From NCBI GenBank assembly GCA_010909165.1, contig VJWM01000144.1, positions 496,001 through 560,000 of the forward strand: a stretch of 64,000 nucleotides of DNA, in the 5' to 3' direction. The notes under the pieces are model-generated. The model worked only from the letters and a program-made list of their open reading frames with translations. It did not search any database and had not been told where the DNA came from. Within the stretch, counting starts at the first letter, position 1. Every line of letters begins with the position of its first letter. Positions 4,365 through 9,998 of the stretch are shown piece by piece. Made by a program: the position numbers and the translations under genes. Source of the DNA: Anthoceros angustus (Eukaryota > Plantae > Anthocerotophyta).

Positions 4365-4620
4365 TTACACCGAGCGTGGGACGTGACGGGATCTCTGTCG
4401 GCGTATTGGGCGGGCCGTCATGTTGCAGCAGCATTTATGACGAGCTTTCTCAAGAAACAAAACACTCTTAGCCGCAGCGCGTGGTACACTCAGTCTCTAA
4501 CATCATCCTCAAGATATCCCGCCGTTCCAAGATGGAGAAGCGCGTGGGCCCGAGGTGGAGAAGCGTTGGCCATGTCAAGAGCGGGGAGCAACTGGGTCAG
4601 TCAGCAGAAAGTGTGCGGAC
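4365..4620 (+). pseudogene. Degraded Mx/DRP4-like dynamin GED fragment
   Basis: RAWDVTGSLSAYWA, then after a frameshift CSSIYDELSQETKHS*PQRVVHSV. This matches TAWDMKESLSDYWAVVCSRISDLLSQEIKYSLTQALADGV at about 9825-9945. Confidence 0.65.
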
Positions 4621-4718
4621 TTGGGACGCAAAAATTCCATTCTCCTTCAACGAGATTTCACGGAGTTTAAAGTGAGAGCTCTCCCGAGTCCCCCACCGAT
4701 AGCGCAAGGCACTCCCTG

Positions 4719-7700
4719 ATGGCCGTCATCGGGATTTCTACTGATGTGGAATCGCCTGCTTCTCGTCACGCTGTGCGTATCTCTTTCTCCAAAGAGGACT
4801 ATCCTTCAGGTTCGAATGTTTGGAGTTCCCCGGCTGGTTGGGACAAGTTTATGATTGGTGAGGACTATTACATTGTGCGGCCACCGGCAGCGGAGCTGAA
4901 GCTGGTGTTGGAAGCATTGTCACCGGGACTTGATGGGTGGGTGTTGCAGCGTCTCAATGTCCTAGCTGACGACCTCATCGCCTGTGGAAACGAAGAGGAG
5001 CAAATGGTGGGTGTTTGCCAGGAGATGCAAGGGCTCTTACAAAATGTGTTTGAGGCCCTCCAAGCATTTGGCAATTGTCCTATAAGCTGGGGGTTGAGAA
5101 AGGCGATGGGCATGTCTTGCACTGTGTTGAAAGTTGGGTGGGCTTTCACCTGGGTTGAAACCCTGCTGCTGGAGCATGCCATGCTTTGGGTTGGTAGCTC
5201 AGAGGGGATGCAAGATATCAGGGACAGGTGGGAAAAGGTGCACTCAGGGTGGCCTCCAATGTTGGAACAGACGAAATGGGCGCTTGACTTACACCGACGA
5301 CTAGCACTGCTCTCTTGCGGCCAAGAGAGGGACGCTGTTGAAAATTTTGAAGCGCCAGATTGCTTCAAGGGTTTTGAAGGGTGTTATCTGTGTTTTGTCA
5401 CTTCTGTCATGTATGACCCCGGTCATAGGAAGCCAGGAAGGCTTAGCTACGGCTATGGCTGGAGGCAGCTTGGAGACAAGTATCTGTGTTGGGCTCAACG
5501 CGCTGAAAGAGCTGGTCCGCAGAAGCATGAGCACTGGCCGCTTGTCAGACTGAGGGTTCTCCTGGAACAGGTGGAGTACTTCAGATCCGTAGGTCGGCTG
5601 GAGCTGCATCATGAGGCTCTGGGGAAAGCATGGGCAGAGGTTCAACAGATTGATCTTCAGCTCCGGTTCGATTTCCCAGTGCCGCTCCCCGAGATCCAAT
5701 TTCTGAAGTTCAAGCTTCTGAGATTTTTGGCGCATTTGCGGGGGACAGGTTGGCAACCCAACGAACTAGTACCTGGGATTGGGCCAGAGGTTTTGGACAG
5801 GTTAGATGTCGTGCAGAGCTACCACCAAGCCCGGTATGCCCGTGCTTGTCTGGTGCTACGTGGAGAGCAGTTGATAGACCAGTTTGGCCAGGTCATGGAG
5901 GGGCTGGAGGTATTTGACGGATGTCTCGCCAAGTCTGGATCCAAGTTCCAAGGAGTGGGGGAAATGATTTTCGAAATTTGTGAGGTGACAATAGCTCGCG
6001 ACATCGCCAAGATGGGTGATCTGGATAGGGTGAATCGGATTCAGGCATTTCTTGTTGCGCACAGGAAGTCCTTGGAACCTCGACTTGTTGCCAACTTGTT
6101 CGTTCGGAATGCGTTGGCTGTTTGTGGGTTCTCGGGGCCTGCTGCGTTCTCCCCTTCTCTTGTGCCTGCACTGAGCCCCGACAAGGCTGTACTGGAAGCC
6201 TTCTGGAAATCCTATAAGGATTCTTGTGCCGCATTGTCACAGGCCGGTGCTACCGGACGCCGATACGAAGTGAGGCTCTCGGATGTTGGCGAGGAGCTCC
6301 AAGTGTCTGCAGGTTCGTGGATTCCCTTCTTCTATCTGTTTCACGTTCACGCCGTGGCGGCCACTGTCTCCAATCTTTTACCGCCCAACGCAGAAGTGCC
6401 ACATGGTGAGATAGCCCGCCAAGCTTTGCTGTCTGTCGAGACTGCCAGGAATTACAGGCACGAGGGATTCGGGCCCCACATCAACTGGAAACGGATCGAA
6501 CGAGCCCACCAGGCCTGCGGCCCCGGTGCAGTGTTTGTGCAGTTCTCAGGCTTGACGTCCTCGTCTCCACGATATCCAGGGCTTTTGGACGTGTTCACTG
6601 TCGGGAGGGATGAAGGCGTGGCCTCGTGCGTGTGCATTGTGGTGCAGGATGGAGGTGTGGCTTCGTGCCACAGATTTGATCGCATTGATTCTGTCAGAAT
6701 ACAAGAAAATGTCCGGGAAATTTCTGATGCTTGTTTTAAGAGGAATCTCGAGAGCGAGTCGTGTAGGAATGCCCTGGAGACGCTGTACGACCTGCTCATC
6801 AGGCCGCTGTTCCACAGCTTGAACCGGGATCAGAATTGGAACCCGCATCGCAAGCTTGTTATCTCCGCGGTTGATTGTTTCAGGGACGTGCCTTTCAGCA
6901 TCCTTCGGAACAGACACTCCGGTTGCTACCTTTTCGAAGAGGCCAAACTGGCCTTCACACCGTCTTTCCTTAGCCTCGACAACTGTCGATTACGGTATGA
7001 GTTTCTCCAGGAGAGGAGCTTGCTTGCCGGCCCCGGGGCTGCAGTGGCCTTGGGAGATCCTCAGTACTTGCTTTACCAAGATGATCCATTGCCGGGAAGT
7101 CGGAAGGAGGTGGATGCGATATGCGAGCTATTCGATTACTGTCACCCCGACTATGAGATTGTGAAGCTGTTGGGTGCTGATGCCACGGTTGAAAGGGTGT
7201 TGGAGTGGGTGAAGAAGCCCTCAGGTGTTGTGGGAAGTGGCACCCAATGCAGCCAAGCCTTCATCCACATCGCAGCACACGGCTCCGGTGGCAAGGAATC
7301 CGATCACGGCACTCTCCGCTTGGCCTCACCTACTATCCAAACCAGAAGGAGACGCCGAGCAGCACAGGGCAAGTTTAAGGCAATGAGGGATGAAGCTGAA
7401 TCCCGCCAGATGGAGGAGAGCCATGAACCTGAGGCTGCTGCGGTCTCCTCAGATGACGTACAGCTTTTCGGGCACTACATGTTACAGCAGGAGGATTTTG
7501 AGGCGGATAGCGCAGCCAAACAGGAGGATTTTGAGGCGGATAGCGCAGCCAAAGGCTCGGACTTTCTTCCTCATCTTCTTCGATCATTGCGCAGCTCAGA
7601 TGCCGGGACTAGGTTGCAGTGCGATGATATTTTGTTGTCAGATTCGGAGTGGTCTGCTTACATGGTTGTCCTTAGTGCCTGCAACACGGCTGTGGGGGTA

Positions 7701-8030: not shown

Positions 8031-8984
8031 AGCCCAAAACTTGTGTCAAAGCCTACTACTAGTCAATGTCCAAGAACTTGTCTTCAATTGGCAGATGACA
8101 AGCTTCGGTCAGCAGAGGTCCGTTTAACGGCATCTCCTACCGGAGGTACGAGATCTCCTACCACAGGGTTAGTCTGGACTCTTCATTCACTCATGAATGT
8201 CCGCAATACTATTTGCCTGTGGAGGTCACAGGGGTGCCTTCAGCAAGCTTGTGACTGAACCAAGGTTACACTGAGAGACTGAGATATACTAGCTTGGTTT
8301 CGTCATACTGGGCTACTAGCATACCATACGAGCCGAGTGTGCATCCCTCCGACTGTAGCAGCACGATTGAGACCATCGTTTCTTCTGAGCATTGTCGTTG
8401 ATTGCAGAATTATCAGGCCGCTTTCGGCGGAATGGAGGCTCGTCTTCCACTTCGAATAGCATGTCGCTGGTTTGGAACTTGCGGTCTGCACTTTCGACTT
8501 CTTTATTGTACACTGTGCTGGATTGGAAGAGGAGAGCTGCCTTGAGGAAGATGGCATCGAGAAAGCTGTGACATTTTAAGGCGCAGGACAAGGGTGCTGG
8601 AGATGGCAGGGCATCCGAAGTATGTGATGATCGATCATCTTGGAGACTCTGATATGCCCAATACCTAAAGATCTATGTGATGCATACCGAGACTCAAGGA
8701 TCAAGACTCCAGAGAGCATGTCCGAGAACCAAGGACTCTCATCATGTCTGAAGGCTATATATGTGCTGCCCAGGGCTCTATATTTGTATCATAAGCGTCT
8801 GTAGAAACCTAATCCCTTCGCAGGTCGAGAAATCACCATCACCCGAAGGTCTTCTGCAGGATTGCAAAGCAAGAGAAAGGAGCTGGCAAGCCTTCATCCA
8901 CGAGTGGAGAACAAAGTCGAGGCCCATATGGCCTTCGAAATAACCATGGCGGACGAGACTGTGATAACGGACCAGTTCATTCTT

Positions 8985-9998
8985 CCGGAAGCGTACACAG
9001 CACGTCTGGATGATATGTTTGCTGGTATACATGTCACCTTTACAGTCGTTGAAGTGTGGTGCCCTGAAAGCAGGCTGCACCTTTCTTCTATCTATAACTT
9101 TGCTCATCATTTGAGTCTATCAATTGTATCTCATGTCCGGTCCCTGGATGGATTATTCTGGCAGCCTTTTCGGAGTATATGCAAAAATCAGGAGCAGGAC
9201 TGATGGATCCTCCCAGTATAGAGGACATCACGGAGGTGATCGCTGAATGTAAAGGAATCTCTCTTCCCAATCTTGTCCCCACACAGCTGGTCTTCCAGAA
9301 CCTGGTGAAAAGGCAGGTCGACCAGATTGCCGATGCCTGTCATACGCTTGTCCAGGAGGCCCACTCGTACTCAGCTCACGTGCAGATGCAGGTAAGCAGT
9401 GCTCAATAGTCTGTAGTGCACAAACGTTCTTGCTGGGCAGTGGGCAGTGGGCAGTGGGCACCATGTGAGATTTCATCACATCCATTTTGGGTTGCCATTT
9501 CAGGTGACCAGAAACTGGACAGTTGGCTATTCATTCTTGAGGTTGGCCACCGAGGTTGCATCCCGGAATGCTGAAAGTCGCCGCAACTGTGAAACGTTTG
9601 TGGAGAGGATGCTAGCCAAGGAAAAAGCTATCATATTCACCAAGAACAGCATGTACATGAACAAGTTGGGGAAAGCTAAGATCATGGAGCAAGCAGAAGC
9701 ATGTGACTTCCAGGTTAGCTTGAAGCCACCGCCTGTGACTGAACCTGAACAACACAATCCACGAGAACTTAGTTGCTTTCAACTTGGATGTGACAAGATG
9801 AAGCAATCGTGTGGGCTCTTGCAGACAGCGTGGGACATGAAGGAATCTCTATCGGACTATTGGGCGGTGGTATGCAGCAGAATTTCTGACTTGCTTTCCC
9901 AGGAAATAAAATACTCTTTGACGCAGGCTCTGGCGGATGGTGTGCACGAGCGTCCTCTGCTCCAAGCGGAGACTGTCTTGGCCCCTAGTTTCAGCTAG
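8985..9998 (+). pseudogene. Mx/DRP4-like dynamin C-terminal half (stalk and GED) with no GTPase domain; 3 exons
   Basis: Spliced product reads EAYTARLDDMFA|AFSEYMQK...ECKGISLPNL...HVQMQ|VTRNW...EKAIIFTKNSMYM...AWDMKESLSDYWAVVCSRISD. This resembles plant DRP4 motifs (HCTARL, KGIGLPNF, AFDMKMRITSYWKIVLRRIVD). GT-AG introns at about 9025-9164 and 9392-9503. No P-loop found upstream. Confidence 0.75.

Follow-up and report, generated by a model that had tools for sequence, protein, structure and literature searches.

An intact CHAT protease gene in Anthoceros angustus and the dynamin fragments that are probably its bystanders

Does a gene for a CHAT protease in a non-seed plant form an innate-immunity cluster with the dynamin-like sequences around it, or are the two neighbours through local rearrangement? 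The question is raised by a stretch of 64,000 nucleotides from Anthoceros angustus (Anthocerotophyta; GenBank assembly GCA_010909165.1, contig VJWM01000144.1, positions 496,001 to 560,000 of the forward strand), which is referred to below as the window and numbered from its first nucleotide. An uninterrupted open reading frame (ORF) of 1103 amino acids (4719..8030, plus strand) lies here between fragments of dynamin-family sequence, and an earlier note on this DNA had interpreted the arrangement as a defence locus composed of Mx-type (DRP4) dynamins and a CHAT protease. We find support for a CHAT protease gene that is intact and, as judged from its sequence, catalytically plausible. The reading that we favour, and hold to be probable rather than assured, is that of a real, lineage-specific CHAT protease gene for which the dynamin pieces are bystander duplicates.

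The probability that 1103 consecutive codons are free of stops is (61/64)^1103, or ~1e-23, and the ORF is therefore not a product of chance. The G+C content (GC) by codon position is periodic in the N-terminal half (0.62/0.42/0.57) as well as in the CHAT half (0.59/0.44/0.60), and flat in 8031-8861, the ~830 bp past the stop codon. For transcription we relied on X1, a single public run with ~29 Mb of contigs that is guessed to be RNA and that holds 77% of the words sampled from 4300-10200. The contigs are colinear over the ORF, with 0 differences across 4621-6752, and none of them lies on 4300-4496. The 5' untranslated region (UTR), which starts with the first contig, contains no upstream AUG and has an in-frame stop at 4668-4670, the ATG at 4719 being the first AUG past 4621. 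Since the X1 contigs contain no splice joint in 4621-8030, the label “intronless” that the earlier note had given to the ORF holds. The same run also includes a GT..AG joint (9391/9504) and loose ends that match two further splice junctions, which makes cDNA its most likely source. The CHAT gene is very probably a transcribed gene with a single exon, and the prospect of an unexpressed gene, which the earlier note had named as a case against its own interpretation, is not borne out by these presumed RNA contigs. The 3' UTR reaches at least 8659, with 0 differences in the contig 7949-8659, and the non-coding stretch up to 8804 holds many short upstream open reading frames (uORFs). We also observed that X1 carries a 3-nt deletion at 7226 and substitutions nearby, within 7190-7268, at a depth of ~229 as compared to ~40 elsewhere in the ORF. 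The probable source of this variant is a close CHAT paralog that is located elsewhere in the genome and expressed at a higher level.

The C-terminal part of the protein matches the Pfam CHAT family (PF12770, clan CD) at 129.5 bits (cutoff 24; E 2.2e-37), the match being split in two by an insert. Both catalytic residues recognized in the earlier note are present, His854 in the motif HIAAHG (codon 7278-7280) and Cys988 in the motif LSACNT (codon 7680-7682), and their columns are invariant in an alignment of 28 sequences, the query and 27 relatives. Of 31 residues that are invariant among nine members of its own clade, the protein retains 29, and at the other two it carries conservative substitutions (L to F and L to V). 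A confident alpha/beta fold was predicted for the CHAT part by AlphaFold2 from the 28-sequence alignment, with a predicted local distance difference test (pLDDT) score of ~90 over amino acids 660-1080. A Foldseek search of this model against the PDB recovered, best first, Csx29/TPR-CHAT of the type III-E Craspase, the CHAT-containing anti-sigma factor DdvA, separase and SAVED-CHAT, and gingipain and caspase-9 were also among the matches. The insert between the catalytic histidine and cysteine is charged and of low complexity, and contains a perfect in-frame tandem duplication of 33 nt (7488-7553; QEDFEADSAAK twice), which is evidently very recent. An even longer insert is found at the same position in a Riccia homolog, while the best-scoring relative (P0002 from ENA, 1214 amino acids) has only ~20 amino acids there.

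The ancestry of the gene is best seen from its relatives. An exhaustive HMMER search yielded 12,169 proteins at E 0.001 or better and five at 1e-30 or better, none of them with more than ~45% identity and all confined to amino acids ~590-1100. The named matches that were looked up are all from non-seed streptophytes, with no named seed-plant member among them: Riccia sorocarpa (KAL3683022 and KAL3689802), Ceratodon purpureus (KAG0608914), Adiantum capillus-veneris (KAI5077259), Selaginella moellendorffii (XP_002992467), Physcomitrium patens (PNR44035) and Chara braunii (GBG64917). Identities to the CHAT domains of these streptophyte relatives are 31-45%, and 37-45% for the closest. In a CHAT-domain tree of 113 rows, the query falls into a clade with the Riccia, Ceratodon and Adiantum proteins, with a support of 89-90 in the Shimodaira-Hasegawa-like approximate likelihood ratio test (SH-aLRT), and all eight named streptophyte rows are located on one side of the midpoint root. 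No exact copy of the 1103-aa protein is on record in public assemblies. The tree contains no indication of recent horizontal gene transfer (HGT), for which the earlier note had proposed a CHAT phylogeny, and vertical descent is favoured because the query nests with the streptophyte rows. An HGT origin was rejected on these grounds and because the GC of the gene is like that of its surroundings. The best explanation of the sequence comparisons is that the gene belongs, as a lineage-specific member, to a so far uncharacterised family of CHAT proteins that is vertically inherited in the streptophytes and is present in a charophyte alga, liverwort, moss, lycophyte and fern. A literature search recovered no paper on non-separase CHAT proteases of plants.

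Unlike the CHAT part, the N-terminal 590 amino acids are unrelated in sequence to those of the streptophyte CHAT proteins, and the gene is also set apart from its homologs by the lack of introns. Weak matches to TPR, phloem-protein-2 (PP2) lectin or UIM domains were seen in the relatives, whereas none was seen in the A. angustus protein, which has no Pfam TPR match at E 0.1 or better. A word search with amino acids 1-590 gave no match (one marginal match was obtained with the whole protein), an hhalign comparison with the N-termini of the clade relatives reached a probability of 0.5%, and the protein atlas offered a weak TPR lead for this region and nothing else. The earlier note had singled out the structure of the first 600 amino acids as worth predicting. 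The AlphaFold2 model for this segment is all-helical, with ~21 helices at low confidence, and a homolog was not detected. Kinship of the N-terminus with the dynamin stalk was rejected, as a blastp comparison of the two gave nothing. The domain heads also differ among the relatives: P0002 has a PP2 lectin domain followed by a helical region and then the CHAT domain, which indicates that the N-terminal “heads” vary within the family. Furthermore, contig GL377701.1 of Selaginella moellendorffii contains, at 3894-14939, two tandem TPR-CHAT genes, each followed by a minus-strand gene of ~340 amino acids without a Pfam family, and this repeated two-gene unit is possibly a pair of a protease and its partner.

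Judging from the helical N-terminus and the CHAT fold in the AlphaFold2 models and from the top Foldseek matches, the layout of the protein is that of Csx29 and separase. Csx29, or TPR-CHAT, of the type III-E CRISPR Craspase (PDB 8eey_B, 7y9x_B) likewise consists of an N-terminal helical domain, which in Csx29 is a helical-repeat domain, followed by a His/Cys CHAT protease. It was the best Foldseek match (E 4e-11), at a sequence identity of ~11%. The NCBIfam model for Csx29 (NF041237) scores 12.8 bits over the CHAT part, whereas its cutoff is 300, which places the protein outside the Csx29 family as this model defines it. Unlike the Csx29 system, the host is a eukaryote and the locus has neither CRISPR genes nor a CRISPR partner, and unlike Csx29 itself the protein carries a 95-aa insert between the catalytic residues and no TPR motif that is detectable by sequence in its N-terminus. 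PADLOC gave no match for the CHAT protein.

To our knowledge, separase is the only well-studied eukaryotic protease that combines a helical N-terminal domain with a CHAT-like caspase fold, and its activity is controlled by a bound inhibitor. The A. angustus protein, as modelled, has the helical N-terminus and the fold in common with separase (Peptidase C50; PDB 7nj1, 5u1s), which is a distant structural match. However, Pfam at E 0.1 or better gave CHAT alone and no Peptidase_C50, the protein is about half the size of separase, and the proteins closest to it, from non-seed plants, are of the “CHAT domain-containing” type and not separases.

We next turn to the dynamin pieces, of which the one downstream of the CHAT gene is the most complete. 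The earlier note had described it as a stalk-GED remnant. A part of the stalk and half of a GED are indeed present, but “remnant” does not fit, as the piece consists of four in-frame exons (A to D in Table 1) with GT..AG introns, matching phases and a continuous frame, according to the sequence and the X1 joints, and is thus spliced and frame-preserving rather than disrupted. The dynamin model was searched exon by exon only, and exon A gave no Pfam family match. The joint 9391/9504 is contained in an X1 contig, and the loose end ACAGCGTGGGACATGAAGG in X1 matches the sequence from 9825 onward. A complete GED was not found, and there is no further GED in 9996-11760. The last intron (9714-9824, 111 nt) is in frame and free of stops, so that its retention gives an ORF of 183 amino acids (9447-9998). 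A phmmer search of the PDB with exon B and with the ORF 9447-9995 was blank, the protein atlas returned nothing for exon B, and a word search with the 183-aa ORF was also blank, a result that is uninformative about longer relatives. Close paralogs of the dynamin exons may be expressed from elsewhere, as is suggested by mixed variants in X1 at 9361, 9568 and 10031 and by loose ends at the exon borders whose sequence departs from that of the window. Fusion of the CHAT protein to the dynamin piece by splicing was considered and rejected, since no X1 joint leaves the CHAT ORF.

Two smaller copies complete the set. The inverted piece at 1-176, also recorded in the earlier note, proved to be a copy of exon B at 93.75% identity to 9184-9359 and scores 27 bits on Dynamin_M. 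The two exon-B copies differ at 11 sites, 10 of which are in the first 72 nt and one in the remaining 102 nt, which suggests that they carry a mosaic or gene-conversion tract. The ratio of nonsynonymous to synonymous substitution rates (dN/dS) between them is 0.51 on 58 codons with clustered differences, too little to interpret. Upstream of the CHAT gene, the GED piece of the earlier note was confirmed as a 77% copy, although it ends ~240 bp before the CHAT ATG and not ~100 bp from it. In this copy, the acceptor gcag has turned into taca and the frame is broken. A six-frame search for the dynamin P-loop (GxxxSGKS) and DLPG motifs throughout the 64 kb identified neither, the few pattern matches having no dynamin context and being judged as chance. 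Pfam searches of the remaining open segments of 1-620, 3806-4718 and 8043-11760 revealed no further dynamin part and no Dynamin_N, and no more dynamin or CHAT pieces were found in the window.

The surroundings of these pieces are themselves rearranged. The inverted exon-B copy adjoins a copy of the 3' part of a WD40 gene with a 7-nt overlap (TGATTTT), a junction that looks like templated filler from break repair. Next to it is a MULE-like element with inverted termini at 620-679 and 3742-3805 (84%) and a degenerate ORF for a MULE/ZSWIM-type transposase (1509-2015), with no clear target-site duplication seen. Between this element and the CHAT gene are an (ATA)n tract and then the 128-bp GED fragment. 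Short local copies of this kind, joined at microhomology beside a transposon, look like break-repair products and not like the corpses of whole genes. A tandem dynamin array may formerly have existed at the locus. Because of the MULE-like element and the copy of the WD40 gene in the flanks, local rearrangement explains the dynamin pieces at least as well as a module of Mx and CHAT does.

Table 1. Coordinates of the features described in the text (window numbering; X1, the public run described in the text; UTR, untranslated region).
Feature	Position	Strand	Evidence
Inverted copy of exon B, frame open, runs off the left edge of the window	1..176	-	93.75% to 9184-9359
Direct copy (85%) of 11758-12147, the 3' part of a minus-strand WD40 gene	170..549	+	Self-comparison; weak WD40 Pfam match
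MULE-like transposon, ~3.2 kb	620..3805		~60-nt terminal inverted repeats; decayed transposase ORF
Decayed 128-bp copy of intron tail and exon D, in the CHAT promoter region	4350..4477	+	77% to 9805-9926
Minimum 5' UTR of the CHAT transcript	4621..4718	+	First X1 contig begins at 4621
Coding sequence, single exon, predicted helical-domain and CHAT cysteine protease	4719..8030	+	ORF, Pfam, X1 contigs, AlphaFold2
N-terminal region (amino acids 1-590), putative regulatory or sensor domain	4719..6488	+	AlphaFold2, coding periodicity
CHAT protease domain (amino acids ~591-1080)	6489..7958	+	Pfam, pLDDT ~90, Foldseek, clade-invariant residues
Charged low-complexity insert, 95 amino acids (868-962), between catalytic His and Cys	7320..7604	+	Sequence
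Transcribed non-coding stretch past the CHAT stop	8031..8804	+	X1 contig; no Pfam match; no coding periodicity
Exon A, open from 8805, first in-frame ATG at 8928, donor GT at 9025	8805..9024	+	X1 contig ending at 9024 with 11 letters of exon B
Exon B, dynamin stalk, Dynamin_M positions 168-219 of 287	9165..9391	+	Pfam 32 bits (cutoff 28.5), E 9.6e-8
Exon C, end of Dynamin_M, positions 245-285 of 287	9504..9713	+	Pfam E 0.012; joint, and loose end at 9713
Exon D, first half of GED (positions 8-46 of 92), then ~22 unrelated residues and stop	9825..9998	+	Pfam GED E 0.064 (weak)

Is the neighbourhood of CHAT and dynamin sequences found elsewhere? We compared seven related CHAT loci from six other streptophytes (two from Riccia, one each from Ceratodon, Adiantum, Selaginella and Chara, and a Physcomitrium transcript contig). 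For all seven, 10 kb of upstream sequence were included, and for four of them also the downstream flank. None of the seven has a called neighbour that belongs to a dynamin Pfam family, and a tblastn search with the four dynamin exons against these loci gave nothing. With dynamin neighbours at 0/7 related loci and no dynamin GTPase motif found in the 64 kb, the reading as a defence cluster of Mx and CHAT is unsupported. The accompanying claim of birth and death fares better in one respect, in that the fragments do differ in age (77% and 94%), although the debris-like appearance of the flanks weighs for local rearrangement.

There are nevertheless several observations that weigh against our own reading of the dynamin pieces as bystanders. 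A single accident would not account for three dynamin pieces that differ in age and all lie within 10 kb of the same CHAT gene, and both rapid turnover and truncated forms have been described for dynamins of the DRP4 type (PMC11789081). In the downstream fragment, the four exons are kept in frame with a coding-like GC periodicity, and adjacent X1 contigs link the CHAT stop codon to the dynamin exons. To this should be added that the right flank is missing at three of the comparison loci, that the RNA nature of X1 is a guess, and that the helical model of the N-terminus is of low confidence.

These observations lend themselves to other explanations, which have to be weighed against the same data. 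According to one of them, Mx-like (DRP4) dynamins and the CHAT protease act together in a functional cluster of innate immunity that is subject to birth and death, the fragments being the dead members of a local Mx array. Plant DRP4 proteins are orthologs of Mx that are gained and lost rapidly, and truncated DRP4A forms, in which the GTPase domain is retained, occur repeatedly among them (PMC11789081). This pattern of turnover and truncation fits fragments of the dynamin family lying on both sides of the CHAT gene, and the X1 variants and loose ends are suggestive of expressed paralogs. Likewise, CHAT proteases act in prokaryotic defence, and Csx29 and SAVED-CHAT are among the top structural matches. 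However, the A. angustus fragment keeps the opposite end from the truncated DRP4A forms, namely a part of the stalk and half a GED without a GTPase domain, and its assignment to the DRP4 subfamily is unconfirmed, given the blank PDB and word searches. Considering also that no dynamin P-loop or DLPG was found, that the related loci lack dynamins, that the pieces look like general rearrangement products beside a WD40-gene copy and transposon sequence, and that PADLOC was blank, we regard such a cluster as unlikely. Yet another explanation is drawn from the transcripts. The X1 contigs 7949-8659, 8630-8857 and 8830-9024 overlap by k-1, and the last is spliced on to 9165; hence the contigs provide a path that leads from the stop codon of CHAT to the dynamin exons in their spliced form. 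There may thus be a shared CHAT-dynamin transcript and hence some functional coupling. The stalk-only fragment could in that case have been co-opted, either as a spliced 3' UTR through which the CHAT mRNA becomes subject to nonsense-mediated mRNA decay (NMD), a brake that stress could release, or as a second cistron for a stalk-only product of ~235 amino acids that interferes with dynamin/Mx oligomers. With three introns located over 50 nt past the CHAT stop, the mRNA would be a classic NMD substrate if the path is one molecule, and the frame that is kept over four exons ends approximately where the stalk helix of the GED ends. Yet contig adjacency is no proof of a single molecule, and the rise in depth from ~27 to ~60 at 8630, with variant letters only at 8662-8951, suggests a paralog or a separate transcript. 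Moreover, the first in-frame AUG of the stalk ORF, at 8928, comes only after sixteen AUGs of short uORFs that follow the CHAT stop, and the matches of exon C and the GED are weak. Co-option of the fragment therefore seems to us decidedly improbable. We give even less credence to the full version, in which the CHAT mRNA runs into the stalk-only exons as one regulatory unit, be it an NMD-gated protease transcript that is set free as NMD weakens under infection or stress, or a bicistronic mRNA that encodes a death-type protease along with a stalk-only, Mx-like decoy. If true, a single CHAT-dynamin unit would represent an immune module of plants in which a CHAT protease is combined with an Mx relic.

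The remaining alternative concerns the protease itself, as the CHAT ORF could be a young retrocopy or duplicate that is transcribed, functionless and heading toward decay, with an orphan N-terminus that reflects relaxed constraint. Such an origin would be in line with an intronless ORF whose homologs have introns, an N-terminal region of 590 amino acids without a homolog even in its own clade, a fresh 33-nt duplication in the insert and a likely close paralog at higher X1 depth around 7226. It is difficult to reconcile with 1103 stop-free codons, with a coding periodicity that extends to the N-terminal half, and with the retention of the catalytic dyad and of nearly all (29/31) invariant residues. 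Furthermore, the branch to the nearest relative is long (37-45% identity at best), which argues that the gene is old, yet the gene is intact, and neither a poly(A) tract nor a target-site duplication was seen at it. A dying copy is in our opinion quite improbable.

According to the interpretation that we prefer, a real CHAT protease gene with bystander dynamin duplicates, the single-exon transcribed gene would encode a cytosolic cysteine protease of 1103 amino acids with a fast-diverged helical N-terminus, a CHAT domain and a charged insert. By analogy with Csx29 and separase, the helical domain, perhaps together with the insert between histidine and cysteine, may keep the protease inactive as long as no partner or ligand is bound, and the protease, once released by such binding, may then make limited cuts in specific substrates. 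The dynamin pieces would be partial duplicates without a GTPase domain, located where the DNA has been rearranged and visited by a transposon. Of these, the upstream and the inverted piece are presumably debris, whereas the downstream piece appears to be transcribed with its splice sites and frame kept, and is possibly the tail of the CHAT mRNA. Nothing in evidence here points to any cooperation between the downstream piece and the protease. A role of the protease in stress or immunity would be plausible in view of the fast-changing N-termini and the lineage-specific copy number of the family.

An association with Mx-like dynamins would have meant a new kind of plant immune cluster, which our data do not support. 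What the locus does point to is a family of proteases in the non-seed plants that join a helical domain to a CHAT domain, in the same layout as the bacterial Craspase and separase. Being intronless, transcribed and, to all appearances, catalytically intact, the A. angustus gene should be easy to clone and is a candidate for the first biochemical test of the family. The focus thus stays on the proteases themselves, and on what these enzymes sense and cut.

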